64,000 nucleotides of DNA from Oopsacas minuta (GCA_024704765.1 JAKMXF010000318.1:186001-250000); one strand, 5' to 3'. Counted from the stretch's first letter, positions 3,001 to 24,567 are shown. Program-made: numbers and translations. Notes: generated by a model from the sequence alone, not told the origin.

Positions 3001-4517
3001 AAATATCATAAAGACAACTCTCAGCGTAGCTCAAGGGACAGCGAAAATTTCTTCGATATAACCGATTAAAATATGTTACTTTGACGGTTTGGGACCATTT
3101 TTGTATAATTTCAGACTTTGATATAAGCGGGTATTTCCATTTTGACATATCCATATTCGATGTATGGAAATTGAGTGTATTGGAATTCAATAAATACTCA
3201 CTCTTCCTCCTTCTATTAGGCTACAGGCCATTATAAGCTGTGTAGACTTTTCTTGCCATATCATCCACCAAAAATCTGCTACAGTATCAGCTAATGGACC
3301 TAATATTATTCACATAATAAACAATATATATTTACATAAAATTAGCATAATCAATACCTTGTGCTGCAATATATTCATGTTCTCTATTGTATCCCTATAT
3401 AATATATACCCACAATTCAGGGAATAGTTCTATTACAAATGCGTTGCCATGACAACTGTGGGTGTTGTCAATACATAAGGGCCGCATTTAGGTAAATTTG
3501 TGACAATCAAGACGATAGTTCGCATCCTGAAAATTTCAGGTTTTTCTTGGATTAGCGAGCATCGCCCTTGATGTCGTATAGGCATTTTAAGGGCACTTGA
3601 AAGTATTTTGAATGACATCACGGAATTATGTGGTGTTAATTGTAGGTATCCCTTATTCAAATGGCAAAGCTACACTCTCGTAAAAACTATAAAACTTACG
3701 GAAATATAGTTGGCATTTATGAATCCTGTCTCTTCTACTTTCTCAACTTTAGATCTATTTATCCATACTTCAGGATTCTCATCTTGTATATGTCTCTTCA
3801 AGATTATCCTGCTATGCTCGTCTATACGAAAAATGTTTTTATACAAGCAGTAAAAATTGTGTTAATAATCGCAAATAATGTAGCTAACATGGAAGAATGT
3901 TTTTGTATCTGTTTTTGAGTGCATTTTCAGGCTTGGATGCTGTTACAATTTTACAGTCTTCTATTAAGTCAGCCAGGGCCTAATTGATGAGAAAATACAC
4001 AGAGAATATCTGATAACTTAGAATCTACAACCATAAAATATTTAAAATAACACGAGTATACAAACCTCGTATTCTTCTCTAAACAACTTATCTCTATCTT
4101 TATGCATTGTATAAACTCTGATTAGAAAATCCTCCATTGGGAGAGCAGGAATAGCCTTTATGTGTCCTGTTAATTGTTTTGAAGTACGCACGCATAAACG
4201 TTGTTGATTTGATGCATCTCCTTATATGGTATTGTATAAATTAGGAGGCTATAATGCAATTTCAATAAGATCAGGGCCGTCTGAAACTTACTTGATTTGG
4301 ATCTGTTGATCCTATTGATGAGGTCTTCCTTTGCCATTTCGTCATTATTCATACTGCCCTGCTCTTCATCATAAACATCTCCACGTCTATAGAAACAAAC
4401 ATGTAAACAAATAAAGTAAACAAATTATGGAACAACTCACTTTCTAGTACACAACAATAATAACAAGGATATTACTGGTAAGAGCAGGAGAGAGAGAATA
4501 AGCGCAAATAACAGCAT
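1..4517 (-). CDS. Membrane-anchored receptor-type protein tyrosine phosphatase with tandem D1+D2 domains; multi-exon; 3' end runs off the window start
   Basis: Spliced by eye. TM exon ~4526/4517-4441 (MLLFALILSLLLLPVISLLLLLCTRKR), then wedge PMEDFLIRVYTMHKDRDKLFREEYE, KNRYKNILPYEHSR, GFINANYI, YIAAQGPLADTVADFWWMIWQE, KCATYWP, HFQFTGWPDFG (2786-2570), HCSAGVGRTGTF, MVQSLAQYIFLHDALVEAYLCG. D2 exons: 891-801 (KNRDCTVIP), 710-613 (SYINASFVQ), 234-43 (GYWLENNFIVTQEPLSTTMFDFW). Splice sites checked are GT-AG with compatible phases. Confidence 0.9.
1211..1603 (+). CDS. Small Maf-like bZIP protein with a shortened basic region; nested antisense in a PTP intron
   Basis: 130-aa ORF. GLSREQILQLK...KEELKCLNKDLNDLQSERDDL resembles the Maf extended-homology region and leucine zipper, but the NxxYAxxCR motif is absent. 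Confidence 0.6.
   Translation: MAAEIHEHFNDIKSERMEIDLKLIYCFQLNLEEVLFENVDCVRRKMVNNGLSREQILQLKAFRKRERAKLRRKEELKCLNKDLNDLQSERDDLLMEMIGLKEEIVKYQKWEIMTFIEELNDPTSYQENYL
3011..3140. mobile_element. MITE family A copy (degenerate), in a PTP intron
   Basis: Shares 30 bp (aaaatatgttactttgacggtttgggacca) with 4578-4607 and the same core with the copies at 24718, 36447 and 62470; left end agacaactc resembles the TIR cagtcaactc. Confidence 0.6.
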
Positions 4518-4577
4518 AGCAGATGTCTAATACATCTACGTTAATGGAAAGCAATCAGATATCAATAAATAAGCTCA

Positions 4578-4658
4578 AAAATATGTTACTTTGACGGTTT
4601 GGGACCAGAATTCCAAACTTAGATATAAGCAGGTATTTCGGTTTAACGGGAGTGACCG
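4578..4658. mobile_element. MITE family A copy (5'-truncated)
   Basis: Carries the family A core; the right end aacgggagtgaccg+ta resembles the TIR aacgggagttgactg+TA. Confidence 0.6.
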
Positions 4659-4789
4659 TAAAATCTAAATAACAATCCCATTATACATATGTAGTGTGTA
4701 TTTAAGTTATTAATGTATAAGAGCTGTATATTAGGCGTGGATTATGGATAATGCATTTCTTCTATAAAAAAATATACAGCTTTAATAAG

Positions 4790-5044
4790 TTAACCCAAAA
4801 CAAGTAGATATAGAATAGTAATCAAGTTAATAATAATCAAAGGGCCTCTCATTACAACTCGTATTGAGTGTATTCCAGTAATCAGCTGTCCTTTCATTAG
4901 ATTAGGGTGTTCTTCATTGAAACCAAAGTTTTGATCAGATTTTCTACTCAGTCCAATCCTCTCAAGGAATTCATCATTGAGAATAGCTACAGCATTGATT
5001 AGTAGCAGAGATGCTTCTAAAATACATCCGATAGAAAATGGCAT
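4790..5044 (-). CDS. IER3IP1: Immediate early response 3-interacting protein 1 (Yos1 family), ER membrane protein
   Basis: 84 aa, MPFSIGCILEASLLLINAVAILNDEFLERIG...IHSIRVVMRGPLIIINLITILYLLVLG; collinear with the IER3IP1/Yos1 consensus. ATG at 5044 preferred over the ORF-track start. Confidence 0.92.
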   Translation of the reverse strand: MPFSIGCILEASLLLINAVAILNDEFLERIGLSRKSDQNFGFNEEHPNLMKGQLITGIHSIRVVMRGPLIIINLITILYLLVLG

Positions 5045-5400
5045 CTGAATGCTACTATTAATAATAAATGTTATGTAACACATAGAAATGCAAAATAGAC
5101 ATTATACGGGCATTTGATCTGAAGTGGAAAATGATCAAAAGCACTCTTAAACAGTAAAACTTATATTAAAGCCAAATTATTATACCACAGGGAACTATTA
5201 CCTAATATCTCCAATGATTAGTAAGGCATTTTCGACTGAAAGGGGGGCAATAGTCCGTAAGCATGGGTGTAATAACAGCAATAACAGCAATATTATAAAG
5301 GTTGAATAGAAAATAAAGTAGAACCAGAGATTGAAATATAAACAATTACATCATTAACAATACAAATAGGTACATACTGTGTGCTGTGTCTGTGTGTATA

Positions 5401-8400
5401 TTAATTATTTTGTATCCTATTTCGAGTAACAGAGTCACTACGTTGTGCAGCTCCAGCCATTAACTCCATTAATTGATTTGCACGTACTAAAATCGATTCA
5501 TCTGAGACTTGTGTGAAAGTTAGATCAACTTTGTATACGTTTTCCCATTGAAATGCAAGACAACGCTCGAACCTGCCAAGCTCGTATTCACTGCTGAAAC
5601 AAATAACCCAATCTATCGAGTCGAATTGTAGGATGCAATATGGCTTGCCCTCTTCCACTTGAATCTGGTTCAAATCCATTACATAGCTAAGACTTAGTTT
5701 TTTCAAACACTCTTCATGTTCTAACGTTAAACACAGTATATCAGGAGTTAGAACCAATCCACAGTTCATGACGGTTGATTGAGAATGTGCTTTCGACTCT
5801 TGTATACCTCTACCAAAAACTTCCTCACAAATCCCTTGTTTCCAGCATATCAACTCTTTTTCATTACGCATTGAAATTTTAATACTTATCGCATCACTAC
5901 TTGTAATTTCTAATAAGTGAATCCTATCTCCTTCCTCAGCTAGTGTCCTACATCCAGCGGAACCTCCTTTCAAATCCAGGACCACTTTAGGCTGTTTTTC
6001 CCCCTTTATACCGTATTGAGATAATTTAGAGTTTTTAAGTATAAAGTATCCCTCTCCCCAACTGCTAAATAATTTTTGTTTCTTCCAATTTAGATATCCA
6101 CTTAGACCGATATCATGGTTGTAACCTCCAGGATCTTTCTCGTCATCTTCTGAGGTAAATTTGCCACGGAGCGGGCCGCTCGTCACGATTGAGAAATGTT
6201 TAATTTCCAGATGATCTTTGAGTTCTAAGAGAGCACAAAATTTCTTAATTCGTTTAATATCATTCTCAACAACTTTCAGTGAGAGATCTGAGAATATCCC
6301 TGCTGCCATTCCTTGTCGTATCCCAGCTAGAAGACATTTTGACAACTGCTCATTACCAGTATAACAAGTCAATGTAGTGAAATTCTTCTTGAATATGGTG
6401 ATCAATTGCCAGTTAATCCCAATAGTTATATAGTCTAGATTTGAGAATGTTATTGCGTCTTGTTGACAGAACGTCCCTTGTGCGCCATCTTCTACCATTG
6501 TATATACCGCATGGTCTGTGATAAGAACATATATTATGCTAAACATGCCTAAATATTTGCTGTCGAAAGCGCGAAATACTTTTAGAATTTTCTCCTCGGG
6601 GGATAGAAGGATCTTCACACGTATCATGAGTTGGTTATTCTGCGAAATTTTGACTTCTTCAACAAGCTTAGTTTCGCGATCAGGTCGTTTAATTAACGAC
6701 GAAGAATGGAATTCTTTATCTTCTCCAAACATGCTTCTACTCCTCTCTCTAGCATCGATTACATTCTCAACTTCCCATGGATCATCCCCTCCAATATTTA
6801 AATCGACAAATGATAGAGGAGTAACATTTCTTGGCTCATCAGCTCCATCCCTAACGGACCCCTCCAGGATACTATCAACCCCTTCTTGGCTAGAAGGGTC
6901 AAAGAGACTGATACCAACTACTTTTTCTGTTGTCACACGATCATGTTGATCAAGCGAGTAGAAAGCTGCGAAATTAACTGGTACATTAGTACTTGATTCA
7001 CCTAGTGCTGTATCAAGATAGTTAGATAGGAGACCTTCAAAATCTGTGTTGTCTGAATATGGAGTGAGATTCTCATTATATTCTGGTTTCCTTACCTCAT
7101 CTAACGGCTGCTCAATGCTAGTCTCTAGCTTAATAGGTTTAACGTTAGGAGTATTTTGTTTGCTTTCTCTGGAATGTTGTTCTGATTCAGTATCGGAACA
7201 GTAAGGTGGGGAAATGGGATTGTTTAAGGGGGTCGTGTCCACTACAAGGACTTCTTGTATAGATTCTAGTATAGGAGATGGAGATTTAGATACTGTGTTA
7301 TCGATATTTTCAATCCCTGGTTTACTAGCTTCTAAACGCTCTATAATATGACTGAGTGAAGAATCTGAAGATTCATCCTGTCTATGTGAACTGATTTTAT
7401 CTGAAGAACATGGTGACTCTATTCTCTTCTCACTGGGATGTTCTATAATCGCATCAGAAGATGAAGTATCAGATAATGTTATTTCATTATGTCTGGTCTG
7501 TCTGGGCGTCTCATGGTCTAGACTTACCTCCTCCAGTGATGATATATCTGTTGTGTGCCTACTCCCTTGTGTTGTAGGAGGGTTATTAAGATACACAATA
7601 GATTCACCTGTATGTATATCTTCAGATGAATTATCGCCTCCTAAGATTACCATTTCGCTTGGCGAGGAAGTGGATTTAGTTTCTTCTACGGCAAGATATT
7701 CGTTATCATTTTTCAAAGGTATAGGACTTACCGATTTCTTAGTGAAGCTAGTTTTAGCAGTAAGAGTATTTTCATACTTACTACTACCATAGGAACTATG
7801 TTCTATGTCGAAATCTGCGAAATCTGACACTAGACTCGTGGTATCAGCTATGGAACTATTATCAGCAAGAGAACCACCGTTATCTTCTACCGACCACGTA
7901 CTGTTATCTTTCGATTGACCCAAACGCTGAATTCCGCTATTAATATTCTCTCTTTTCTTATGTTTTCTTTGCTTTTTAACTTTACCTACGTGTGTTACCA
8001 ATCCACCATCTTGATCATTGTAATCATCTCTAAGAGATGATACTTTACGCATTTGGTTAGACACGGATTGACTCCTGGAATTTTCCTGGGAGAAATAATG
8101 ACGTTTGGATTCTATGACAGGACGATGGACACTCATCTGGGTTATGAATGGGTTGAGTTCATCTGGTGTGTCATGACCGTTTTCAATAGTGTTCTTATTC
8201 GGGACATTTCTAGTTATGAAATTATCCAAATCTTCTGTCTGTTCAGACAAGAAAGGGGAGGGATTCGTAACCTGAGGGCTCCTGCGATCAACTGGCGGGA
8301 CGGTTATAGATGAAATAGAGCTTATTGAGCTCTCTAGATCTCTCTCTGATATAAAAGAACCTCTACTTCTATGTGGTTTATTGAACTGCAAATTTTGATC

Positions 8401-8973
8401 AACATATTGTGTAGAAATACAGGGTCTTTTGTCTAAATACTCACAATTCGTATTTAGCTCGAATTTGATAAAATCTAACCCAGACACGTGAGTTTGTAAT
8501 ATTTTCATTCTCTCTGCATCGCGTATAAACGCATCAGGCTTGTAGTAAGAACGAATTGGTTTAGAATCTTCTAGAAACAATCTGAAATAAGATTCCATCA
8601 AATGATCATTCAATGCAATATGTAGCCAAGCTCTTCCCTTCCCAATTGCAGAACGAACTAATGTTAGTTGGTTGATGCAAGTAACAACATTACTATGTGA
8701 GAATGTTTTCAGAAATGGCCAATAACCTCTATCTACTCTATTCAAATTGTGTAATAGTATCATGTCTAGTTGGTAGATCAAAGCTTGAAATGAAGGCGTT
8801 TCATTCGTGATGACGTCAAGATTCTCAAAATCATATGTATGTGCAGTGGGTTGTGTTAAAGTTTCATTTGTATCAGTTTGGATAGAAATGAAGTGGAGAT
8901 GCTTTACACAAATAGAAATATCGTCGAGTAAAATATCTTTTATTTCCGCAGAATTCGTGCCTTTATCATTCAT
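5401..8973 (-). CDS. PLEKHM2: RUN- and PH-domain protein SKIP; single exon
   Basis: N-terminal RUN domain (IKDILLDDISICVK...GKGRAWLHIALNDHLMESYFRLF...VSGLDFIKFEL) matches PLEKHM2. Disordered linker with a W-acidic motif (DDPWEV); C-terminal PH domain (GYLNWKKQKLFSSWGEGYFILKNSKL). Confidence 0.88.
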   Translation of the reverse strand: MNDKGTNSAEIKDILLDDISICVKHLHFISIQTDTNETLTQPTAHTYDFENLDVITNETPSFQALIYQLDMILLHNLNRVDRGYWPFLKTFSHSNVVTCINQLTLVRSAIGKGRAWLHIALNDHLMESYFRLFLEDSKPIRSYYKPDAFIRDAERMKILQTHVSGLDFIKFELNTNCEYLDKRPCISTQYVDQNLQFNKPHRSRGSFISERDLESSISSISSITVPPVDRRSPQVTNPSPFLSEQTEDLDNFITRNVPNKNTIENGHDTPDELNPFITQMSVHRPVIESKRHYFSQENSRSQSVSNQMRKVSSLRDDYNDQDGGLVTHVGKVKKQRKHKKRENINSGIQRLGQSKDNSTWSVEDNGGSLADNSSIADTTSLVSDFADFDIEHSSYGSSKYENTLTAKTSFTKKSVSPIPLKNDNEYLAVEETKSTSSPSEMVILGGDNSSEDIHTGESIVYLNNPPTTQGSRHTTDISSLEEVSLDHETPRQTRHNEITLSDTSSSDAIIEHPSEKRIESPCSSDKISSHRQDESSDSSLSHIIERLEASKPGIENIDNTVSKSPSPILESIQEVLVVDTTPLNNPISPPYCSDTESEQHSRESKQNTPNVKPIKLETSIEQPLDEVRKPEYNENLTPYSDNTDFEGLLSNYLDTALGESSTNVPVNFAAFYSLDQHDRVTTEKVVGISLFDPSSQEGVDSILEGSVRDGADEPRNVTPLSFVDLNIGGDDPWEVENVIDARERSRSMFGEDKEFHSSSLIKRPDRETKLVEEVKISQNNQLMIRVKILLSPEEKILKVFRAFDSKYLGMFSIIYVLITDHAVYTMVEDGAQGTFCQQDAITFSNLDYITIGINWQLITIFKKNFTTLTCYTGNEQLSKCLLAGIRQGMAAGIFSDLSLKVVENDIKRIKKFCALLELKDHLEIKHFSIVTSGPLRGKFTSEDDEKDPGGYNHDIGLSGYLNWKKQKLFSSWGEGYFILKNSKLSQYGIKGEKQPKVVLDLKGGSAGCRTLAEEGDRIHLLEITSSDAISIKISMRNEKELICWKQGICEEVFGRGIQESKAHSQSTVMNCGLVLTPDILCLTLEHEECLKKLSLSYVMDLNQIQVEEGKPYCILQFDSIDWVICFSSEYELGRFERCLAFQWENVYKVDLTFTQVSDESILVRANQLMELMAGAAQRSDSVTRNRIQNN

Positions 8974-9446: not shown

Positions 9447-12070
9447 TCAAAGTATAGCATCTTTAGTAGCATCATTAATTCCACCAGAAGGTTCTGATAA
9501 TCTTCTGTTGGTTAAAACGAGAGAATCTACAGCTGAAATATGCTGTTCATCAGGGGTGGTGGTTACCTCGATTGGAGCTGCATCCTGCTTCTTTTCACGT
9601 TTCTCCCAAATACAATAAATGGTTAGAAGAATTGCCACGAAAAGAATGATAAGTATAATAGCAATGAAAGCGCAAATAGGGATTAGAAAGCAAGCGAGGC
9701 ATGGATCACGTGAAGCTAAAAAGTAGGTGGGATAAACACATGAAGGGGAAAATAATATTATATACTTACAGGTCTCAGATGTAGTGATGATGTTAAAAAC
9801 GGCGAATACTGGAGTAGCTTGCTTCAAGAAAATTGAAATTAACACACAACAATTCTACACGAATAAAATCTGTAAAACTAACCTCATTCCTATCATAGAA
9901 TAGTATATAATAGCTGATCTGGTAATCCGTGTTAGATAGAAGTGGAATATTGTAAGCAATAGACCCATTGAATGTATATACGCTTCCTTCACCTACTATG
10001 AATTGTATGTAGTCAGTCGGTTGGTTAAAATATGTATCATCAAGTATAGCATGAATGCGAATAGTGTCAGCTCCATTCCGTAGAATAACGCCATTTGCTG
10101 TTGTTGTTACAGCATTGTATCTCTGATTATTAGTGTATGTTGAGAAAATTGGAGAATTACCGGATTCAGCAATGATATAGATTACCCTATGAAGTGTTTG
10201 TTAAGAACTGATTCTGAGGAAATGTATGTAGTAAATATATTTACTTACACGATATCTGCAGTTAGGAATAACTGTTGTGTTGGTACATATATCTGTATTG
10301 TAGTAGAGGAAATACTTGGTGCGGCTGTTGTGGGCAGATTGCTGTCAGGAACTTTTGAAATACAAAAAATAAATAGTATTTGAAAGATAGAAAAGTATAA
10401 CCAATCAGGTATTACCCATAGGAAAGGTTACAACTGCAGGTGCTGTTGTAATATCCCCTTGAGCTATTTCATTAACAATAGACACATCTACAGAGTATAG
10501 AGTATTAGGAGATAATCCAGTCACAGTTACTTGGTAAGGTCCTGTACTGTTGATAACATAGTATACAATAGAATTTGAATAGCTTGAAGTGTAGTAGAAA
10601 ATGTTGAATGATCTCAACTCTCCATTCACAGTAGAAATGTCTATACTCCAAGAAACATCAATTTGTTGATATGACACAACTAGCAAGCTCAAATTCAGAG
10701 GAATTCCACTAGGAGCTAATAACAAAGATAAATTACACTATTTCTATATACAATATGTGATATACAAATATACTCACCAGCAGAAGGAAATGTAACCTCA
10801 AGTGTAAGAGGGAGGGTGGATCCTTCAGCATTTCGTGCACTCACATTCAACTGGTAGGAATAGTTTGGAAGGAAATCACATACAGTTATATTGTTACCAG
10901 CAGGAACACTAACTGTATCAACAGAAGTAACATCAAGTATTGTACTCGAGTTTGAAGATTGGAAGAAATCACTACTTGGCAGAGTACCCACATACACAAT
11001 GGTGTAGTCCAGTAGAAGACCGTTCAGGAATGGAATCGTGAGTGTAGGTACCAAGAAAGATATACAAGTAGAAGTGAGTGTAAAATTGGTGATTTCTGAG
11101 AGGTTGAAAGGTACTACACTCGGTGGCGCTAGAAAGGATATTTGTAAAAGATGCAATTGAAATGATTAAGTATTTGTATTTGTATTTGCTTTTACTCACC
11201 AACTACTGGAGTAGTTGCTGATATCGATTCACTAGCTACACCTATACCAGCTCCATTGACAGCTCTCACAGAGACAGTATAAGTTATTCCTTCTTCCACT
11301 ATGAAGTCGTTTGAGAAACCAGTGATAGAAGATATTGGATATGACTCTGTCGTCTCAAATTCCTGTGTATAAGGTCCCAGTATTATGATATTTGAAAAGT
11401 CTATGATAAAGCTAGTGATAGGTCCATTCTGTTCTAATTCTGGAGGAGCGAACCATGACACACGTATTGTAGACGCATTTATAGTGTTAACTGAGCTAAG
11501 ACTTCCTGCAGCAGGGACTATTGGAAAAAATTTCCAAAAATTATTTATAGCAGATACAAGCCTTTTATATGTTACCTGCTTGATCAGTTGTAGCCATTTG
11601 TACACTTGGTGATACCATTGTAGAAAGTAGAATGCCAACAACAGTCACAGTGTACTCAGTGAAGGGAAATAATCCAACTACCTCAAGGACCTGGTCATTA
11701 TAATTCGGGCTCATGCCTATGTTTGTATCTATCAAAACAGAGTCCGTAGTGCTACGTACAGCTGATAATATTGTTACATTGTAAGATAGAACACCAGGTA
11801 CAACCGTTCCAGAAAAGCTGATATTCAGAGCTGTAGAGTTGAGTGCGACAACAGTAAGATTCTGTACTGGCTCACTAACTACACAGTAAAAGTAACTAAA
11901 TATTTTTCTATAAATATAAATTTCAATTCCCCTTACTTGTTGCTGTTGTTTGTTGTATTATCAAATACAGCACCTAAAATACAGAGAATTATTAGCATTT
12001 GAAAATTCTTGTAAAAACGTGCAACCTTGTAACTTACTGAATAGAAAAGAATCAGATATAGTTTATACAT
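9447..12070 (-). CDS. FN3 receptor A: signal peptide, 4 FN3 domains, RPTP-like juxtamembrane domain, TM helix, short tail with no catalytic domain
   Basis: Exons 12070-12038, 11973-11937, 11878-11576, 11517-11200, 11128-10778, 10715-10416, 10351-10249, 10186-9883, 9821-9770, 9715-9447. SP MYKLYLILFYSVLYLIIQQTTAT; FN3 motifs WFAPPELEQNGPITSF and GLSPNTLYSVDV; juxtamembrane VGEGSVYTFNGSIAYNIPLLSNTDYQI; TM CLACFLIPICAFIAIILIILFVAILLTIYCIW. Confidence 0.85.
10452..11523. repeat. Left arm of a ~1.07-kb near-perfect inverted repeat (partner 13433-14498)
   Basis: The reverse complement matched the right arm wherever compared, including two introns. Differences noticed: one synonymous T/C and one 6-bp (aaatac) unit. 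Confidence 0.95.
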
Positions 12071-12653
12071 ATCCTATTTCTGTTGTTAATAACTATTTTC
12101 ATACAAGGCATACCTTTATATTGAGCAGTTCACAAAAACTGCTTGCAAATCTCCAATAATTATGATTCGTAACCAGTAGCTCTAACATTTGATACTATAA
12201 AAACTGTTAATGTACTCAATTACTACAACACTGCATTATTTTGCGAATTATATCCATGATTGCCAATATTCGTCTGCCACTCGATCTAGTGTCACACCCT
12301 ATTCTACTTATCAATTACGTTGGAGTGAAATTATTCTTTTGATATGTCTATTTAGAAACATTGTACGTGGCTTTACAATGCATTCAATAATTAGTTGATT
12401 GTATAACACTGTCTTAATAATTTCCAAATTTGGAAAGGTGATCATTCCTATTCTACAATTGTACAATATTTATTATTATAGATAAATTGGAATGTTATCG
12501 TTTGTAAGAGGATACATTATATTATCCTATTCTACACTTCGTATTTGTTTATGAGTAATAGTATCGTGCGGATTTGTGGTTGATCTGGCAAAGAAATGAC
12601 TTCAACTGAGGGAAATAAATAGATCACAATAATGAGAATATTAGAAAGTTAAA
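12071..12653. promoter_or_regulatory. Putative bidirectional promoter between FN3 receptors A and B
   Basis: 583-bp AT-rich spacer between the divergent ATGs at 12070 (-) and 12654 (+); positional inference only. Confidence 0.5.
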
Positions 12654-15450
12654 ATGTTCAAAAATTCTATGATATTTTCCTGCAGTGTAAGTTGTATAGT
12701 TTATTGACTTATGCCACAATTGCTTGTGTCTCAACCACTTTGAATGGCCATATCTCGAAAACCGTTTTATATCATCAAAATTACAAAAATGTAGGTCAGC
12801 GTGCCATCTTCCCAAAAAGTTGTGTCTCGGGATAATTTGTCTTACCATAAATACAATATACTGGACCTTAATTAAAAATTATCCAGTTCGATGCCTGAGT
12901 CTGAGCGGTGAATTAATCTCCAATTTTAAGTTATATACAGCCTAATATTTACCTTATTACATCAAATTTTAGATACTCTGCTTCCTTCTCCAACTATCAA
13001 CTGCATCAAGTAAGTGATAATTGAAATCTGGAATAATATGAATGATTAACACTATTTTTTACATTTTGTAGTTTTCTCTCAAGTCGTGGATCTAACTGCA
13101 GTTGCACTCAACTCCACCGCTCTCAATATCAGCTTTTCTGGATCAGTTGAGAGTAATGTTGTATCATACTGTGTGACAGTAGCTTCTGATGTGCGTAATA
13201 GTACTGACACAGTCCAAATAACTACAAACATAGGAGTATTCCCGAATTATACTCGACAAGTTCTTGATTTTGGTGGATTATTTCCCTTCACTGAGTATAC
13301 CATAACTGTAATTGGTACCACCTTAACTTCTGATGTATTAGATCCAGCAATTGCGATTGAGACAACAGAACAAGCAGGTAAAGCTTGTAACTGTAAAAAT
13401 GTCAAAAAATATCAATAAATAATTTCTATCTTCAATAGTCCCTGCTGCAGGAAGTCTTAGCTCAGTTAACACTATAAATGCGTCTACAATACGTGTGTCA
13501 TGGTTTGCTCCTCCAGAATTAGAACAGAATGGACCTATCACTAGCTTTATCATAGACTTTTCAAATATCATAATACTGGGACCTTATACACAGGAATTTG
13601 AGACGACAGAGTCATATCCAATATCTTCTATTACTGGTTTCTCAAACGACTTCATAGTGGAAGAAGGAATAACTTATACTGTCTCTGTGAGAGCTGTCAA
13701 TGGAGCTGGTATAGGTGTAGCTAGTGAATCGATATCAGCAACTACTCCAGTAGTTGGTGAGTAAAAGCAAATACAAATACTTAATCATTTCAATTGCATC
13801 TTTTACAAATATCCTTTCTAGCGCCACCGAGTGTAGTACCTTTCAACCTCTCAGAAATCACCAATTTTACACTCACTTCTACTTGTATATCTTTCTTGGT
13901 ACCTACACTCACGATTCCATTCCTGAACGGTCTTCTACTGGACTACACCATTGTGTATGTGGGTACTCTGCCAAGCAGTGATTTCTTCCAATCTTCAAAC
14001 TCGAGTACAATACTTGATGTTACTTCTGTTGATACAGTTAGTGTTCCTGCTGGTAACAATATAACTGTATGTGATTTCCTTCCAAACTATTCCTACCAGT
14101 TGAATGTGAGTGCACGAAATGCTGAAGGATCCACCCTCCCTCTTACACTTGAGGTTACATTTCCTTCTGCTGGTGAGTATATTTGTATATCACATATTGT
14201 ATATAGAAATAGTGTAATTTATCTTTGTTATTAGCTCCTAGTGGAATTCCTCTGAATTTGAGCTTGCTAGTTGTGTCATATCAACAAATTGATGTTTCTT
14301 GGAGTATAGACATTTCTACTGTGAATGGAGAGTTGAGATCATTCAACATTTTCTACTACACTTCAAGCTATTCAAATTCTATTGTATACTATGTTATCAA
14401 CAGTACAGGACCTTACCAAGTAACTGTGACTGGATTATCTCCTAATACTCTATACTCTGTAGATGTGTCTATTGTTAATGAAATAGCTCAAGGGGATAAT
14501 TCATTGACTGATATGGCTCAAACTCTCCCAAGAGGTAAGTATTTATTATTTATTATATCTCAAATGTCTTTTTTATGTGCGTTTTATTTCTAAAGCTCCT
14601 GACAGCGTTATCCTCACAATACCGCCAGAAATTTTCACTACAACGGTACAGATATATATTCCAACACAACGACTATTCCCATCTGCAAATATAGCGTAAG
14701 AACAATTTCATATTAATCAATATAATTTGCTTAGAATCGATTCTTAACAAACTCTCGGTACTTTTTTTATAGGGTAATCTATATCATAGTCGATTCCACT
14801 AATCCTCCAGTATTCTCTACATACACTAATGATCAAAGATACAATTCTGTAACTACAACAAGTGATGGAGTTATTCTGGAGGATGGGACTGCTACAATTC
14901 GCATTCATGCTGTACTTGATGATTCATATTACAACCAACAGACTAACTACTTACAGATTACAGTAGGAAGAGGAGAAGTATTTTCAATCAATTCCTCTGT
15001 GTTTGACAATATTCCCCTGTTATCAGGAACTAGTTATCAGATTAGCTATTATATATTGTTCTATGATGAAAATCAGCGAATTTCTCCTGAATTTACTTTC
15101 TTCGAAAGCTTTACTGCAACTGAAACTTGTAAGTTGAAATATTGAAAAATTTTATTTTGTTGATTTATAAAATTTTATTTTTAGCAATTCCTTATGTTTG
15201 TTTGGCCTGCTTCCTGATCCCCATCTCTGTTATTCTTGCAATCATTGCAGTCATAATACTGGTTATAATTGCAGTATTGATACACTTTTTGGTATGGAAA
15301 AGACGTGGAAAAAAGGAACAAGTCAACGTACGTGTCATTCCAAATGAAAATTTCAGTAAAACAAATAAAAATTCTTTTGTTATTGCAAATCCAGATATTG
15401 AGGCAAAGTCAACTCCTCCACCAGAAGTTTATGGGACAAGTAGTGTATAA
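12654..15450 (+). CDS. FN3 receptor B, inverted paralog of A
   Basis: Exons 12654-12686, 12973-13009, 13072-13377, 13439-13756, 13822-14172, 14235-14534, 14596-14695, 14773-15128, 15185-15450. SP MFKNSMIFSCSILCFLLQLSTAS; TM CLACFLIPISVILAIIAVIILVIIAVLIHFLVW; tail ends EVYGTSSV. Confidence 0.85.
13433..14498. repeat. Right arm of the inverted repeat
   Basis: See left arm. Identity begins at the acceptor before FN3-2 and stops abruptly after aaggggata near the end of FN3-4. Confidence 0.95.
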
Positions 15451-15860: not shown

Positions 15861-18800
15861 CTATTGTAATGATGTATTACAAACCTGACTTTCCTGTCCA
15901 GAGAAGTTGTCACACAAGTGTTCTGATTCTTTATCAATAGGACTCCCCATAAGTTCTGTTAGGACAGGTAATCTCTCTTTACCTTCAATCAACTCCAACC
16001 TAATGCTCTCAGCATCTACTACTGATCCTCTACTTTCATCTCTCACAATATCTCCCATAGATTTTGATCCATCCTTTAGTGTGTTTCCTAATAGATCTGT
16101 TCCTTTCAAAGTATCATCCATTGGCGCTGAGTCATTCATAGATTCTCCTATAGACTTCTGCTCCTTGGGTGTTGAACCATCTGGTGTGCTCCTCATAGGT
16201 TTTGGGACGTCCGTTGGCATAGTCTCAATATCAATAGGGGGGAAATCCAACCTGACTACAATATTATCTCTCCTTTCTCCTTGCGTTGGAGTACCAATAG
16301 GATTCACACAAGAAGTAATTTTATTAGTAGCAGCACTAGCTCCAGGAAACTGGTTTTTACCTATAACAGCGTATATTGCTTCTTTCGGAACTTCCACTTC
16401 TTCCAGCTCCTTCAGACTACTCCTGTTTGAGAATATTGTCCTTGTCTTCATTTCTACTGCTGTACTTTCTATTGCGATAATCTTTTTCTCTCTATATCTC
16501 CTCATGCACAGTAGTAAGCAAGTAATAACATGTGCCAATATCAAGCATATTACACAAAAGACACCGCATGCGCTAATGGAAGATATTACACTTGTGAAAA
16601 CATTAGCCGAATCTCCTATGAAAAACATAGTTATAAAAAATTGTATGAGATTTCTGTATGCAACTTTTTGAAGTAACTGCATACTTACCAACCCATTCCA
16701 ACCAATATCCCTGAATTTTCAAATAATTTAATGTATTTTACGTATTTCATTGATTTCCAAATTTCTCCGGGATAATCAGAATCCCTGAGGTGGTTTACAA
16801 ATATGTAATCGTGTTCATAAATATACTATACTTGCTAATCTTACCAAGTAAAGTCCTTCCTCCAGATATTACATTACTCTTTGCACCTATTCCCTCTTCA
16901 TTTTCAGCAGTTACATGCAAGGTATAAATTGTCTCGAGTGATTGTAGAGGGAAAGTTACATCTAGAGCAATTCTTGAATTAGCTGGGTATATTATAGGAG
17001 TTGATAATTCGTGGATGAATTCATTTTCGATTAAGCTGAGAGTATCTACATAGACTATGTGATATTTTGTAATAGGTCCATTTTGTTCAATTTCTCTAGG
17101 GGGATTCCATCTGATCGTAACTGAAGTTGTTTCCAGTGTAACCGTCAGCAGGACAGGAGCGCCAGGCACTAAATTTATTTATGTGAAAATTCAGAATTTA
17201 TTTTACAAATTTCATGTATTACCTTCTTGTAAAGTTCTTTGCGTCTCGTTAGCACTATCAGGACCAGATCCCAGTGCAGTAGATGCAGATATAGTAAAAT
17301 TATAGACCACATACTCTTCTAATCCTGTAATATTCTGACTATGAGATTCTGTATCAGGATAACTAGAATTGAGAATGAAGGTTAATTCATACGTCCTAGT
17401 ACTGAATAGTGAAGCAGTATACAAGATGGTGTAATGAGTAATTAAACCATTCTGATGTAAAATGGATGGAGGAGTCCAGTAAATTTGCAATTCTGTAGCA
17501 GATGCTGTCAGTAAAATTATATCTGGTGCGATAGTAGGAACTAGAGTAGGATTGAGGTAAATTGTAAAATGTAGAATTAAAATAAAATGGATTTCGCCTC
17601 TTAGCAAGTCATCTTTGCACGAATTTCCCTTGCTTATACAGTAGAACTCGGATAAGACGTACCCCCCCCGGGAAACAGAAATTAGTACGTCTTAACCGAG
17701 TGTACGACTTCCGTACAATGAAGGTTCTATACTGTATATTCCCTGATGCTCATGGTATAGTAGCTTCCATTTGTGTTCCAAAGAATCGTACTATGACCGG
17801 ACAATTTACGCAGATGAATGTTCGACGGAGGTAGAGAATCACTACTATTCGAAGAGACCAAGTCATGGTCTTAAGCCGAGTACGTCTTATCCGAGTTCTA
17901 CTGTACGTGAACTTGCTTTTAGAGGTATTGTTTCCAATATAAATCCTGAAATACTCGCTATTAGGCGTACACCACTGCAAATATTTACCTGATTCATTCG
18001 TCCTCTGTCGTATACTAGCAAATAAGCTATTTCCGCCTATTGTACCAGCACTTACACTGATAGTATAATTAATATAGGGAGATAATCTCCTTATAATCAG
18101 CTGCCCAGCAAGACTATAGTAGGTCAGGTTATCCAATCTTAAGATATCGGATCTCAGTACTGTGTCGAATATTACTCCTCTATATGTGATGTTATAGTAG
18201 ATAATAAGACCATTCTGATTTAGTAATGGGGGAGGTGACCAGGTGAATAGTATACTGGTAGAGTTTATAGATCGTGCTGTAAGGTTTTGTGGAGGTAAGT
18301 CAGGTGCTGTAGAATACAATTATAATACAGTGTAACCTCATAAACGGTGTGTCAGGGATGCTGCCCAGTATTTGCCAATTCTCGGTTTGTGGAGGTTCAG
18401 TTGATGATACTATATTATTACAATACCTCCAATTCCAGTAGTAACATTCACTTCCTGACTAGAAGGCCCTTCTCCTATCGCTGTAACAGCACTAATTATA
18501 ACAGTATAATTATTACTCTCCTCCAATCCAATGATCGTAGTATTGACCATTGCTCTAGCTGGATAGTATGACATGACGTATATAGTCCTGTTCTGTACAT
18601 CGGTATCAAATGGATGACCATATAAGGTAACATAATATGACTCTATTACTCCATTTTGTTCAGTTGCTGGTGGTGGGTCCCAGGTTAATTGTATCATTGT
18701 TGATCCAATAGGAATTCCTGTGATATTTTCGGGCGCAGCATTGGGAACTAGAGTATAAGTTGGTGTAATTTGGATTATTATTATTATTATTTATGACAAC

Positions 18801-20239
18801 ATACCATCTTCTAAAGTTGTTGTATTTATTATTTCAGATGCATTTCCCTCACCAATTGTATTTATTGCACTAATTATAATGGAATATTTAGTGTATTCTT
18901 CTAAACCAACTATTGTAATATTGTATTCAGATTCAGCAGGGTATGTCACAGTTGGTACAATGAATAGAAGAGTGCCAAATTCAATTATTGTGATATCATA
19001 ACCAGTTATAGGACCATTCTGTTCAAGCTCATCAGGAGGTAACCATGATAAATATATTGCAGTAGAGTTGAATGCTTCGCCCGTTATGTTAAGTGGCGGT
19101 GCAGATGGAGCTAAATAGATAGTGTTAGAATTTTGATAGAGTATGAATGGGAAATTGATGGTACCTGATTGAGTTGTGTGTACAGTTATTTCCTCAGAGA
19201 TTCCATCTCTCAATCCATTGTTTGCTATAATTGTAATATTATAGCTGTTGAATTCCTCCAGTCCAGTTAGATTGTAAGGGCCTTGTAATCCAGTGGTAGA
19301 AGCACCATCTTCAACATTTATTTGAATAGTTCTAACAGTTTCATCGAGTGGGAATCCAAAGTAATTCAAAGTGTATGAAGTAATAATCCCTGTAGTTTTC
19401 GGTAAGTACCAGAAAAGTTGTAATCTCGTAGAACTTGTTGCAAGTGTTAAAATACGCTCAGGAGCACAAGCTGGAGCTAGTAGTATAAATACAAATGCAT
19501 GAATTTACTTGCTATTATATGTGAATTTCTATCAACAAATAAATTGATACACCTACCTATTGATACTCTAGAAGTAAATCTTAATATGTTTTCAGTGAAT
19601 ATTGTTACCTCAATATTGTAACCTATAAAGGTGTTGATATCTCTAAAAGTATATTCAAATATGGCAGCATTTTTTGTAGATACGGTATCAGATTGGTCAA
19701 TTTTGTATTGTGACGTTCTGGAGGTTTTAACTAAATCTGAATCATCTGAATCTGAATCTGAATCATCTGAATCTAAACCTGAACCTGAACCTGAACGTGA
19801 ATCTGAATCTGAATCATTTGAATTTAAACCTGAACCTGAACCTGAACGTAAACGTGAATCTGAATCTGAATCATCTGGTTCAAATTTAAATTCGTACCTC
19901 CTTAGCAAGTTAATCGATTGATTTGTTACGACAGTCCATCGGGCAGTGAGGGATGTATCTGTCGAGTTTATGACTGTAAAATTTTCGATTGAAAAATCTA
20001 GAAAATGGAAATTATACATTTTTGCAATTGAACATATTATATTAGTTATAATTACCAGATTTCACCAGATTGATAGCAGCAAATGAGAATATCTAAACAA
20101 CATTCAATACATGAATATAAGTCACTAGAAATAAATATATAATTGAACCCTTGAATAATTACAGGAACATTTGCAAGTTTGTTAGCCCAATAATTTCATA
20201 TTAACTTACACAAACGATTGTAGCTATCCAGATTTTCAT
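15861..20239 (-). CDS. FN3 receptor C: signal peptide, 7 FN3 domains, TM helix, ~200-aa disordered tail
   Basis: Exons 20239-20210, 20092-20056, 19997-19557, 19476-19165, 19110-18805, 18747-18427, 18306-17989, 17540-17223, 17168-16845, 16616-15861. SP MKIWIATIVCIFSFAAINLVKS; repeated WxPP...QNGxIxxY and GLEEYxxY motifs; phase-1 FN3 exons; TM ISACGVFCVICLILAHVITCLLLCM followed by RRYR. Confidence 0.85.
17639..17903. mobile_element. 265-bp MITE in an intron of receptor C
   Basis: Perfect 24-bp TIR cagtagaactcggataagacgtac / gtacgtcttatccgagttctactg with TA on both sides; subterminal gtcttaNccgag repeats. Confidence 0.93.
19735..19875 (-). repeat. Coding hexamer repeat encoding a 47-aa Ser/Asp/Gly tract
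   Basis: gattca and ggttca units; translates as DDSDSDSRLRSGSGSGLNSNDSDSDSRSGSGSGLDSDDSDSDSDDSD in the receptor C frame. Confidence 0.9.
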
Positions 20240-20919: not shown

Positions 20920-23900
20920 ATGTCACTAGGAGATAGAAAATATTTCGAACCTCGAGATGATGACAATCTTACAGGTCTAGCAGAACTCACTACTGAAACC
21001 ATCTTACAGGCCGTGAAAAACCGTTATTTGGATGACAAAATATACACACATATTGGAGAGATATTAATAAGTGTAAACCCATTCAAATCTCTTCCGATCT
21101 ACTCCCAGGATATCGGGATCCTTTGTAACCAAATTGTACAGAACCCTGTCGCAGGCGGACAACTCGTACCGCATATATTCAATGTAGCTTGCAAATTATA
21201 CCACACTATGTACCATACTAAAAAGCAACAGGTTTGTGTTATTAGCGGTGAAAGTGGAGCTGGTAAAACGGAATCTGCGAAATTCGTTATACACCAAATT
21301 GTCAATGAGTGCATTGCTAGTGGTGCTAATGCAGCGACCCTCTCGCATAAGATTTTGATGGTAAATCCTATCCTTGAAGCTTTTGGCAATGCACAAACTC
21401 TTTTCAATGATAATAGCTCACGATTTGGTAAATATATTGAACTGACATTTGACACTAATCGAGTAGTGACTGGTGCAAAAATGGCACAATATTTGCTTGA
21501 GAAATCTAGGATTACATTTCAAGCTGTCGGAGAACGTAACTTTCATGTTTTCTACTACCTTCTAGCTGGAATAGCTAAGAGTAAGAGGAAGGAATTATTC
21601 TCAGAAATTCCAAAATCTTATAATTTTATTTATCTATCAAATTATCGTTTTTCTGATAACGATTTTACCTTAACGGAAAGTTTGGCGAATTTTCACGTTC
21701 TTTGTGACTGTTTGGATGCGATTGGGTTCGAGAAAGGTGAGATTATTGATATATTTCGCGTTTTAGAGTTAGTCCTCCATATTGGTAATGTTTCATTTTC
21801 TAAATCAGATCAAGCAGAAGTGAAAAACTTGACTCAAATTAATATATTGTCAGAACTCCTTGGTATAGAACCCTCCCATATAATCCAAGCACTAACTGTC
21901 TCGGTAAATACCGCGAGAAATGAAACTATCACAATTCCATACAATTCGCGAAAAGCCCTAGATGTGAGAGACGCGACAGCTAAAGCACTTTATGAACGAA
22001 CTTTCGCGTGGATTGTATATCGAATCAATGAGTCACTCTCCCCCTCGCCACAGCACAACATTAACCAAATAGGTATACTCGATATTTTTGGTTTTGAGTG
22101 TTTCCAAAGAAACGGATTTGAACAATTTTGTATTAACCTAGCCAATGAACAACTCCAGCATTACTTCAACCAGTATATATTCTCTATGGAGCTAGACGAG
22201 TACCAGAAAGAAGGTTTAGGAGGAATAGAAGTAAGCTTCAAGGACAATTCAAACATTATAAACCTATTTCTAAATCGTCCTTACGGTTTGATATCTCTTC
22301 TGGATGAACAGACTCGTTTCCCAAAAGGCAATGACAGTGGTTTGTTACAGAAATGTAAAGAGAATATAACTCGCAATAAAGCATTTATTGCTGACTTAGG
22401 AGATGAACCATTTTTCACAATCAAACACTATGCAGGAAATGTTCGTTACACTCTAACTGGTTTTATTGAAATTAATCGTGATACTCTACCTAACAATATC
22501 ATAACTCTATTACAGCAATCTCCGTGTCAGCTGATTTCACACATATTCACCTCAAATCCATCAGAAGTGGACCCAAACACCCTTTTAGCCCCCTCTAGGA
22601 GAGGCAGTAGGTTGTCCATGAGACGAGGATTGAGTGGGATTAGGGGTGGGGGTTCTGTCAGGAGGACATGGGGAGCAGCTAATGATTCGACGAATTCAAT
22701 TGCAGTCAAAGCTAAACCAAATTCTAAGACATCTGTAGCAGGACAATTCAGAAAATCTCTTGAATGGTTAATGGCTAAGCTCTGCTCTGCTAATCCACAT
22801 TTTATCCGGTGTATTAAACCGAATCCTAACAAATTACCGAATACATTTCAGAACGATTTCGTTGCTAACCAGCTCAGCTACACAGGCACCCTAGAGACAG
22901 TAAGAGTTAGGAGGGAGGGCTATTCATATCGACCTCTCTTCTCAGAATTTGTTGATATATACAGTTCTATTGCTTACCCATTCTTAGAGAAAATTAAACC
23001 AAACGCAAACGTTTGTCTTAAGATATTAGCTAAAGTTGGTTTGACAGAATTTAAAATTGGTCGATCAAAGATTTTTCTCAAATACTTCCATCAAGACCAT
23101 CTAAATCGAGTTTTAATAAATATGAATAAACACGCTATAACTCTACAGAAACACTATAGAGGATATATAACTAGAAAACAACTCAAAGGTATTTATACTG
23201 AAAGATCTAAACAGGAAGTACAGCTGACTATATTTCTTAATTCTATAATGAATACTTCTCCGTTTATATTACAGAGACAGCGTACTATGATTGAAGAAGA
23301 TGAGGCTAGGAAAATGAGTAGGATGTTAGCTCTGGAGCCTGCACTTGAGCCTGAGGTTACTCAAGAAGATATAAATTTCGCAGAGGGTATAAAACATACA
23401 GTACTACCAATTTTGAGTAAAAAAGAATTGAAAAAGTTGACAAAGAAGCAGAAAAAAGCGAATAAAACAGCTAAAAAATCGTGTTCCGTTCCGAAAAAAT
23501 CTGAGAAAATAGTAGAACCGAAACCGAAATTATCACACAATACACTACAACCATATATGAAAGAAATGCCACATGGTGAAGTTAATAAGGAACAAATGTT
23601 TATTGCTGTTGACCCTGACTATTTAGATATTTTCCATCAACCAAGTCAATCAGCTGATGAACTCAGTGATAGCACTTCTGAATCAGATTTTTATCTTTCT
23701 GTTATGATACCGCCGACAGCAGCTGGTAATATCCCTAATCCACGTGTAGTTCATATTGGTCAAGTTACTACATTCGATGATGATTACATTCCTATTCTAT
23801 CACCACATGACAATAGTATAGTTACAAATATGTCGGAAGATTTGTATGGGAATGAACCTCAATTCTGCAGGTCTGAATTATTAATTAATGATATTACAGT

Positions 23901-24567
23901 GAATGATAGATTCTATCATTCTGAGGTTCCAACTTCTACACATGAGGAGGCTATTTACTCGAACGTTATACCGAAAAATAAGGTGTCAAATTTGATTAAT
24001 AAATATGAAATTGTTCCACCTATTAAGCCGGGTATTCCACCTAAATCCACTCATGTACGTGCTATGGCTATTAACACATCTCCTGAACAGAGGGAAGTTA
24101 TAGAAGAGAGAGTTATCACTGCACTAGCTAGGGAACAGAGTCTTAGAAGATGGAGGAATAAAGAGATCAAGACTATGCGAGAGGATAATCAACCAGCTGT
24201 GTGGTTTCATGGCATGATACCTCGTGATGTGGCAGAGAATATTCTCCTCCCACTCGAGAACGGGTCCTTTCTGGTTCGACAGAGTGAAAACCGTCTCGGC
24301 TACGCGCTGTCTGTTGGTTTTAATAGAGAAGTACATCATTATATGGTTGAGACATTACCAGGTGGGAGATATAGGCTAAAAGGGTCACAAATTGAGCATG
24401 TTAATCTCCATGAACTTATTTGGTATTATACACATCATATTATAAGTGAAAGATTCCGTGAGAAGCTGTATAAACCAGTTCCAAAGATGGAGGTTATAGT
24501 TACAGAGACGAAGAAGACTCCAAAGTATGTAAAAATTAAAGATCTTTTCAAGCGAAAAAAGAAATGA
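20920..24567 (+). CDS. Unconventional myosin with an IQ motif and a C-terminal SH2 domain (class XXVIII-like); single exon
   Basis: P-loop GESGAGKT, LEAFGNAQT...NSSRFGKY, switch II DIFGFE, FIRCIKPN; IQ LQKHYRGYITRK; SH2 WFHGMIPRDVAENILL...GSFLVRQSE. Confidence 0.92.
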   Translation: MSLGDRKYFEPRDDDNLTGLAELTTETILQAVKNRYLDDKIYTHIGEILISVNPFKSLPIYSQDIGILCNQIVQNPVAGGQLVPHIFNVACKLYHTMYHTKKQQVCVISGESGAGKTESAKFVIHQIVNECIASGANAATLSHKILMVNPILEAFGNAQTLFNDNSSRFGKYIELTFDTNRVVTGAKMAQYLLEKSRITFQAVGERNFHVFYYLLAGIAKSKRKELFSEIPKSYNFIYLSNYRFSDNDFTLTESLANFHVLCDCLDAIGFEKGEIIDIFRVLELVLHIGNVSFSKSDQAEVKNLTQINILSELLGIEPSHIIQALTVSVNTARNETITIPYNSRKALDVRDATAKALYERTFAWIVYRINESLSPSPQHNINQIGILDIFGFECFQRNGFEQFCINLANEQLQHYFNQYIFSMELDEYQKEGLGGIEVSFKDNSNIINLFLNRPYGLISLLDEQTRFPKGNDSGLLQKCKENITRNKAFIADLGDEPFFTIKHYAGNVRYTLTGFIEINRDTLPNNIITLLQQSPCQLISHIFTSNPSEVDPNTLLAPSRRGSRLSMRRGLSGIRGGGSVRRTWGAANDSTNSIAVKAKPNSKTSVAGQFRKSLEWLMAKLCSANPHFIRCIKPNPNKLPNTFQNDFVANQLSYTGTLETVRVRREGYSYRPLFSEFVDIYSSIAYPFLEKIKPNANVCLKILAKVGLTEFKIGRSKIFLKYFHQDHLNRVLINMNKHAITLQKHYRGYITRKQLKGIYTERSKQEVQLTIFLNSIMNTSPFILQRQRTMIEEDEARKMSRMLALEPALEPEVTQEDINFAEGIKHTVLPILSKKELKKLTKKQKKANKTAKKSCSVPKKSEKIVEPKPKLSHNTLQPYMKEMPHGEVNKEQMFIAVDPDYLDIFHQPSQSADELSDSTSESDFYLSVMIPPTAAGNIPNPRVVHIGQVTTFDDDYIPILSPHDNSIVTNMSEDLYGNEPQFCRSELLINDITVNDRFYHSEVPTSTHEEAIYSNVIPKNKVSNLINKYEIVPPIKPGIPPKSTHVRAMAINTSPEQREVIEERVITALAREQSLRRWRNKEIKTMREDNQPAVWFHGMIPRDVAENILLPLENGSFLVRQSENRLGYALSVGFNREVHHYMVETLPGGRYRLKGSQIEHVNLHELIWYYTHHIISERFREKLYKPVPKMEVIVTETKKTPKYVKIKDLFKRKKK

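Follow-up and report, generated by a model that had tools for sequence, protein, structure and literature searches.

In the glass sponge Oopsacas minuta, two head-to-head FN3 receptor genes share a nearly identical inverted core, probably through recent gene conversion

The genome of the glass sponge Oopsacas minuta has been published as 365 scaffolds comprising ~61 Mb, with a G+C content of 36% (PMC10280926). Within a stretch of 64,000 nucleotides (nt) of this genome (hereafter the window, along which all positions are counted unless a locus name precedes them), there are two genes, LOD99_6526 (gene A, minus strand) and LOD99_6527 (gene B, plus strand), which are intact paralogs arranged head-to-head and divergently oriented, and whose middle parts form two almost identical inverted arms. 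The paper describing the genome makes no mention of fibronectin, gene conversion, LOD99_6526 or LOD99_6527 (PMC10280926). The assembly searched here comprised 61.5 Mb in 365 contigs. Positions 10.3-14.6 kb of the window correspond to 196.3-200.6 kb of scaffold C318. Gene models were assembled exon by exon and the exons were searched singly, whereas the joined coding sequences (CDSs) were used for frame checks and for the ratio of non-synonymous to synonymous divergence (dN/dS). The exon models of both genes are letter-identical to public proteins, which are NCBI hypothetical proteins (P0018 for LOD99_6526 and P0001 for LOD99_6527). Thus, an independent annotation agrees with the models, which are as follows:

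9447..12070, minus strand: gene A (LOD99_6526), 10 exons, open CDS of 2070 nt, 689 amino acids, all introns GT-AG
12070-12038, 11973-11937, 11878-11576, 11517-11200, 11128-10778, minus strand: exons 1-5 of gene A
10715-10416, 10351-10249, 10186-9883, 9821-9770, 9715-9447, minus strand: exons 6-10 of gene A
12654..15450, plus strand: gene B (LOD99_6527), 9 exons, 688 amino acids, all introns GT-AG
12654-12686, 12973-13009, 13072-13377, 13439-13756, 13822-14172, plus strand: exons 1-5 of gene B
14235-14534, 14596-14695, 14773-15128, 15185-15450, plus strand: exons 6-9 of gene B
12071..12653, no strand: intergenic region, 583 bp between the start codons at 12070 (minus) and 12654 (plus)

A first-pass annotation of this DNA had assigned the same exon layout to both paralogs. 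The layout is indeed shared as far as the types of exon are concerned, i.e., signal-peptide exons of 33 nt and 37 nt, four exons encoding fibronectin type III (FN3) domains, and the juxtamembrane and transmembrane exons; the number of exons differs, being 10 in gene A and 9 in gene B. Every FN3 exon of both genes has phase 1-1. The intergenic region of 583 bp presumably contains putative divergent promoters, and we infer that both genes are functional.

A and B each encode a type-I membrane protein in which a signal peptide is followed by four FN3 domains, a fifth domain next to the membrane, a single membrane span and a short tail. Pfam fn3 matches all four FN3 exons, two of them above the curated cut-off and two slightly below it. 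The parts of the proteins that differ between the paralogs are encoded by the following exons:

11576..11878, minus strand: FN3-1 exon of A (membrane-distal), Pfam fn3 E=1e-4
13072..13377, plus strand: FN3-1 exon of B (membrane-distal), Pfam fn3 E=7.5e-5
9770..10351, minus strand: juxtamembrane region of A, exons 7-9, a linker and a fifth FN3-like domain
14596..15128, plus strand: juxtamembrane region of B, exons 7-8, 62-66% amino acid identity to A
9447..9715, minus strand: transmembrane and tail exon of A, a hydrophobic span and a tail of ~55 amino acids, 32-33% amino acid identity to B
15185..15450, plus strand: transmembrane and tail exon of B, a tail of ~55 amino acids

The two tails have a loose common layout, with a [D/N]S[L/F]V motif and a hydrophobic C-terminus. 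When A and B were read by eye, no motif of the immunoreceptor tyrosine-based inhibitory or activation type (ITIM or ITAM) was found in the tails, and no charged residue in the middle of the membrane span: the tail of A has no tyrosine past the membrane-flanking YCIW, and that of B has a single one, in EVYGTS, which does not match the ITIM pattern. Pfam detected no intracellular tyrosine phosphatase domain and no recognisable domain in the ~55-residue tails.

A repeat search revealed inverted arms at 10447-11190 and 13760-14503, and at 11176-11523 and 13433-13780, each pair being 99% complementary, with weaker pairs at 71-75% alongside. The core and the spacer that it encloses were delimited by alignment at the level of single bases:

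10452..11523, minus strand: core arm of gene A, 1072 nt, containing FN3-2, FN3-3, most of FN3-4 and two introns
13433..14498, plus strand: core arm of gene B, 1066 nt, inverted relative to the arm of gene A
11183..11188, minus strand: a 6-bp unit, CAAATA, in the FN3-2/FN3-3 intron of gene A and absent from gene B, the sole insertion or deletion (indel) in the core
11524..13432, no strand: spacer, containing both FN3-1 exons, both pairs of signal-peptide exons and the intergenic region

The arms are 99.7% identical, and the protein that the core encodes is 100% identical between A and B over 310 codons. The first-pass annotation had noticed that FN3-2 to FN3-4 are essentially identical, including two introns, and had counted a single synonymous difference in addition to the 6-bp unit; the identity and the 6-bp unit are as described, and the substitutions number three (11450/13506, 11324/13632 and 10974/13976), all of them exonic and synonymous. 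The edges of the core are sharp to within a few bases. On the 5′ side the core begins 6 nt before the acceptor of the FN3-2 exon, and on the 3′ side it stops 36 nt short of the end of the FN3-4 exon. When the two halves of the locus were aligned globally, identity per 100 nt was 99-100% in the core (94% in the windows with the 6-bp indel) and fell to 45-81% outside it, and the boundaries are therefore as abrupt as had been claimed. The two halves of the spacer are 45-73% identical to each other, and near-random around the centre. For FN3-1, where ~58% protein identity had been estimated by eye, 59% was measured; the dN/dS between A and B is 0.40, which does not point to positive selection on this domain as a whole. 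The core occurs exactly twice in the assembly. Chance could not plausibly leave 1.07 kb with a difference of only 0.3% between flanks with a difference of ~30%.

The synonymous divergence (dS) of the core is 0.013 (3 synonymous and 0 non-synonymous changes in 310 codons, with ~230 synonymous sites), whereas outside the core it is 0.83 in FN3-1, 0.67 in the juxtamembrane domain, and more than 2 in the transmembrane segment and tail. The two introns within the core are identical save for one repeat unit. Since the identity spans two introns as well as synonymous sites, and the dS of the core is 0.013 compared with 0.67-0.83, the identical core most probably arose by recent intrachromosomal (ectopic) gene conversion between A and B. 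The first-pass annotation had also regarded the core as a gene-conversion tract, and this was supported both by the identity in sliding windows and by the contrast in dS.

The same identity might be thought to have arisen without conversion, i.e., through a very recent duplication, or through purifying selection of extreme strength on FN3-2 to FN3-4. The core protein is, after all, 100% identical, and all three differences are synonymous, for which the chance under random placement is ~0.015; this suggests that both copies are constrained. However, selection acting on a protein does not hold introns and ~230 synonymous sites identical, for which reason selection alone was rejected, and the introns differ between species, which argues against conserved functional elements within them. 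Nor can a recent duplication of a whole gene leave homologous flanks at a dS of 0.7-0.8 or more, while a recent duplication of the core only, into an already existing paralog, is gene conversion under another name. An origin without conversion is extremely improbable.

Several observations weigh against gene conversion, or limit what can be said of it. For every segment tested, the closest relative of A within O. minuta is B, and vice versa, so that the case for conversion comes from the contrast in divergence and not from a conflicting tree for this pair. The G+C content at third codon positions is not raised in the core (0.29, compared with 0.26-0.31), which gives no sign of long-running GC-biased conversion, and this form of conversion was dropped from consideration. 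In addition, the two cores and the orientation of the spacer come from a hybrid assembly of 2023, produced by SPAdes with k up to 99, followed by SSPACE, Pilon and GapFiller (PMC10280926); such a pipeline could under-call small differences between near-identical repeats, and the orientation of the spacer in the assembly depends on long reads or mate pairs.

If the assembly were at fault, one core would have been collapsed, gap-filled or polished with reads that belong to the other, and the real sequences would be as diverged as their flanks. Near-identical repeats can be blurred by assembly from de Bruijn graphs, here with k up to 99, and also by scaffolding, GapFiller and Pilon. Against this, three single-nucleotide differences and one indel were retained between the cores, which implies that the copies were resolved separately; there are 0 Ns in the window; and in both genes the reading frames and splice sites are perfect. 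A search for a diverged copy of the core in another place, which would be a sign of misassembly, found none: there is no contig in the assembly with core exons of ~70% identity, and no third copy of intermediate identity, the next best matches being 40-48% identical in amino acids. Furthermore, the same mosaic is present in contigs from two other samples. Taken together, these observations make an artefact improbable.

These contigs are two metagenome contigs from ENA, representing different species and carrying the loci L011 and L012/L013 (assemblies ERZ25069837 and ERZ25071281). Judging by their names, they appear to be metaMDBG long-read contigs, with coverages of 188x and 197x, and they would derive from related sponges, presumably hexactinellids. 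On the 689-kb contig with L012/L013, the order of genes is the same as in the window: a tyrosine phosphatase (PTP), Yos1, PLEKHM2 and the receptor cluster. The PLEKHM2 protein is 70.6% identical in amino acids to that of the window. Between PLEKHM2 and the next gene there are four receptor copies, alpha (minus strand) and beta, gamma and delta (plus strand), of which alpha and beta are a head-to-head pair adjoining PLEKHM2, as in O. minuta. From the acceptor of FN3-2 onwards, alpha and beta are 93-100% identical (88% in one window that bears an indel), whereas their FN3-1 exons and the promoter spacer are 36-56% identical per 100-nt window. The edge of homology coincides with that of the O. 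minuta pair, at the AATAG/exon junction. L011 has at least three copies, which are direct repeats and mostly 93-100% identical per 100-nt window over ~3.3 kb, and the gene that follows them is colinear with the neighbour at 16.3-20.0 kb in the window. Thus, at the orthologous clusters of two related sponges there is the same mosaic homogenisation, which adds to the case for a conversion tract in O. minuta.

In copy alpha (L012:4210-6250, minus strand), FN3-4 and the greater part of the juxtamembrane domain have been lost and FN3-1 is highly diverged, and the remainder is 93-100% identical to the neighbouring copies. Alpha may be a decaying copy that is kept fresh by conversion, or a donor for conversion. 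An exact look-up of its FN3-1 returned only its own contig. The corresponding look-up of LOD99_6526 returned no other O. minuta record, from a collection that may leave out near-identical genomes.

Different segments of the receptors give different accounts of their relationships. In FN3-1, beta and gamma (same species) share 92% of their amino acids, compared with 68% for beta and c1 (different species), whereas in the tail beta and gamma share 67%, compared with 88% for beta and c1. This conflict implies that the ectodomain exons have been homogenised within species and that the tails are older. In the tree of tails, beta, c1 and c2 form a clade (support 97/98), and a clade of tails by species is disfavoured (p of 0.03 in the approximately unbiased test, for a group that was chosen post hoc). 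Overall, the ectodomains of the related species group by species and their tails by orthology. A and B group together in every segment, at different depths: they are sisters in the trees of FN3-1, FN3-4 and the juxtamembrane domain, at depths ~50-fold different from that of the core. This fits a series of layered conversion events, of which the latest covered the core only. As a trace of a past swap, orthology of the FN3-1 domains of A and B to those of alpha and beta was sought; A and B were found to be sisters, and alpha was on a very long branch.

The proposed sequence of events is as follows. The DNA of one copy would have been used as the repair template for the other across the exons of FN3-2, FN3-3 and FN3-4 and the two introns between them. 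Conversion probably stopped where the partners were already too diverged to pair, i.e., in the intron before FN3-2 and in the last strand of FN3-4. The core tract would then be one episode in the continuing concerted evolution of a small receptor cluster of glass sponges, in which the ectodomain exons appear to be repeatedly homogenised within species, and the tails, together with the FN3-1 exons of the head-to-head pair, would retain older differences.

The exon-level comparison also revealed a difference between the paralogs near their 3′ ends:

9822..9882, minus strand: a 61-nt intron, present in gene A and in the copies of the related species, and precisely missing from gene B

The juxtamembrane exon of gene B is 356 nt, which is the sum of 304 and 52 nt in gene A. 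The alignment of this region covers 15048-15136 (plus) and 9762-9912 (minus) of the window, L011:3885-4057, L012:10360-10530 and L012:19335-19500. As the related species retain the intron, it was gene B that lost it; the loss looks clean and lineage-specific, and is near the 3′ end of one paralog. The signal peptide, read by eye, is apparently encoded by one exon of 61 nt in the related species (L012:8229-8311), compared with two (33 and 37 nt) in O. minuta. L012 also contains a 92-nt internally palindromic repeat, in two copies that are 98% identical (4416-4507 and 14815-14906), and a nested, hairpin-like inverted repeat between beta and gamma (L012:12336-12962), while copy c2 of L011 has ~330-360 nt extra in the intron after the FN3-4 exon (L011:7640-7970). 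These repeats and the extra segment look like small insertions of mobile elements in the cluster.

Bacterial shufflons and invertons are inversion switches. The first-pass annotation suggested a role of this kind for the O. minuta pair, in that a crossover in the core would invert 11.5-13.4 kb. As far as the geometry is concerned this is correct: the segment 11524-13432 would be inverted and both reading frames would stay open. For an actual flip, or for a designed cassette, no support was found. As a flip-flop cassette, the pair would undergo recurrent and perhaps somatic or regulated crossovers in the core, each of which would join the module of promoter, signal peptide and FN3-1 of one gene to the stalk and tail of the other, yielding four receptors from two genes. 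The 1.07-kb inverted arms, the 1.9-kb spacer, the in-frame identical cores and the intactness of both genes would permit this; a second species has a head-to-head pair with the same 5′ edge of homology; and a eukaryotic example of regulated inversion between inverted repeats is the mating type of Ogataea polymorpha (PMC5720833).

Several lines of evidence stand against such a cassette. The core and each FN3-1 exon were found only at this locus, in a single arrangement, and no alternative haplotig with a flipped spacer was found, although one assembly cannot show absence. A search of 5.8 billion protein clusters yielded the two parental proteins only, and no full-length chimera. There is no recombinase or transposase among the open reading frames of at least 130 amino acids in the window, or in a Pfam scan of eight neighbouring genes (a weak test), which identified PLEKHM2-like, FN3 receptor, SH2-myosin and integrin alpha genes. 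In the relatives, the copies that are direct repeats (the majority of the copies) are equally homogenised, and a crossover between direct repeats deletes or duplicates rather than inverts; thus, homogenisation does not need inversion. The inverted partner in L012, alpha, being without FN3-4 and most of the juxtamembrane domain, is a poor fit to a maintained two-way cassette. Finally, in human Y palindrome P6, conversion occurs from arm to arm in inverted repeats and inversions are only rare relative to it (PMC3723533). A flip-flop cassette that re-pairs the modules is highly improbable, and a programmed cassette is unlikely to much the same degree. Occasional inversion polymorphism is plausible and is compatible with gene conversion.

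The one feature that keeps the more interesting possibilities alive is the edge at the FN3-2 acceptor, which is shared between species. One possible cause is selection that favours a difference between the two distal domains; another, no less possible, is a barrier that reinforces itself, given that conversion is unable to extend into stretches that have already diverged. The most far-reaching proposal, that the core is kept as a substrate for recombination, with recurrent and possibly somatic inversion of 11524-13432 diversifying the receptors in the manner of a shufflon and with the shared edge as a maintained cassette boundary, has a very slight chance of being correct.

The pair can be compared with several known systems. 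As in the Y palindromes, the inverted copies are ~99.7% identical through coding and non-coding sequence, the spacer is not homogenised, and inversion by crossover is possible. The arms, however, are 1 kb here and tens to hundreds of kb there; and here they are inside two genes, only the middles of which are homogenised, the spacer and the outer flanks being old homologs. Secondly, the pair is similar to flip/flop switches, such as MAT of Ogataea polymorpha (PMC5720833) and the bacterial shufflons and invertons, in that a segment lies between inverted repeats and its inversion would change which module is joined to a fixed part. The likeness is one of geometry only, as no second orientation, recombinase or regulation was observed here.

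The third comparison is with the paired immune receptors of vertebrates, which evolve in concert through gene conversion: Siglec-11/16 (PMC5701461), NKG2 and other opposing pairs (PMC3210942), and CEACAM (PMC7042247). In both cases neighbouring paralogs have extracellular exons that are homogenised within species and transmembrane or cytoplasmic parts that are distinct; at the loci of the related sponges, the ectodomains are younger than the tails. In contrast to the vertebrate receptors, the domains here are FN3 rather than Ig or lectin, the membrane-distal domain of the O. minuta pair is not homogenised, and no ITIM, ITAM or mid-membrane charge was seen. The analogy to paired receptors drawn by the first-pass annotation thus fits loosely: it is the distal FN3-1 that is diverged (59%) and the stalk, FN3-2 to FN3-4, that is identical.

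The fifth, membrane-proximal domain of ~120 residues has no match in Pfam. A profile built from five O. minuta paralogs matched 17 proteins among 1.84 billion cluster representatives (15 of them at E <=1e-7), most of the matches being exon-sized fragments. With so few matches, the domain is lineage-restricted in sequence. Exon 8 of gene B was used for an AlphaFold model of this domain (mean predicted local distance difference test score 75.6). Foldseek found nothing significant for this model in the PDB. In an exhaustive structural alignment, the fourth FN3 domain of human PTPRM (FN4; 8a16_A 620-723) was at the top, with a Z of 7.2 over 90 residues, followed by many ordinary FN3 domains with Z values ~2 units lower. 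The Atlas feature search assigned the domain to Fn3_PTPRU (score 0.93), and the Atlas fold search returned LAR-type and SUSD1 proteins that carry Fn3_PTPRU (template modelling scores 0.61-0.62). According to the model, therefore, the domain would be most like PTPRM FN4, and A and B may be receptor-phosphatase-like ectodomains, each anchored by one membrane span and followed by a short tail that has no catalytic domain. Similarly to the R2B phosphatases (PTPRM/K/T/U; Fn3_PTPRU PF23144), their run of FN3 domains would end, next to the membrane, in an atypical FN3 domain that bears a helical insertion. Unlike R2B phosphatases, they have no MAM/Ig head and no intracellular phosphatase domain, and Pfam does not score their membrane-proximal domain.

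At least three more O. minuta genes have the same juxtamembrane domain, at ~40% identity (C15:34607-37190, C103:6460-16352 and C319:46065-56241), some of them with long FN3 arrays. Another locus, C188:566975-568366, has only FN3 exons, which are 40-48% identical to those of the core. To judge from sequence comparison, these genes and the pair would constitute a small family that is confined to these sponges.

Tyrosine-phosphatase exons, a Yos1-like gene and a PLEKHM2-like gene lie on the strand of gene A and downstream of it (~2000-5083, minus, and 5401-8973, minus), and the same order is found in L013:12640-18702. The phosphatase has catalytic exons, with the WPD and HC motifs in the open reading frame 2536-2745, and the Yos1-like gene is at 4790-5083. 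Thus, a separate phosphatase gene lies ~6 kb from the pair, on the strand of gene A, with the phosphatase-like ectodomain genes that have no catalytic domain only a few kb away. On the other side, the convergent neighbour of gene B (15861-20019, minus) encodes a multi-FN3 membrane protein with a long cytoplasmic tail, which contains an acidic stretch rich in Ser, Asp and Gly; this gene is colinear with L011:9830-14050. Further along, at 20920-24567 (plus), is an intron-less gene for a myosin of 1215 amino acids with a C-terminal SH2 domain (Pfam Myosin_head, IQ and SH2).

The mechanism proposed for the pair is an ordinary one, and the pair is a further case of the partial gene conversion and concerted evolution that are already known elsewhere. 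The finding would have far greater importance only if both orientations of the spacer, or chimeric transcripts, existed. Its value is that of a clean and well-bounded case, in an early-branching animal, of partial conversion between paralogs that are inverted relative to each other. For annotators it is a warning, as trees of these genes made domain by domain will disagree. For glass sponges, it indicates that a lineage-restricted cluster of phosphatase-like FN3 receptors evolves in concert, with the ectodomain exons homogenised and the tails not, as in the paired immune receptors of vertebrates. The cluster is thus a reasonable candidate for recognition or adhesion receptors of sponges.

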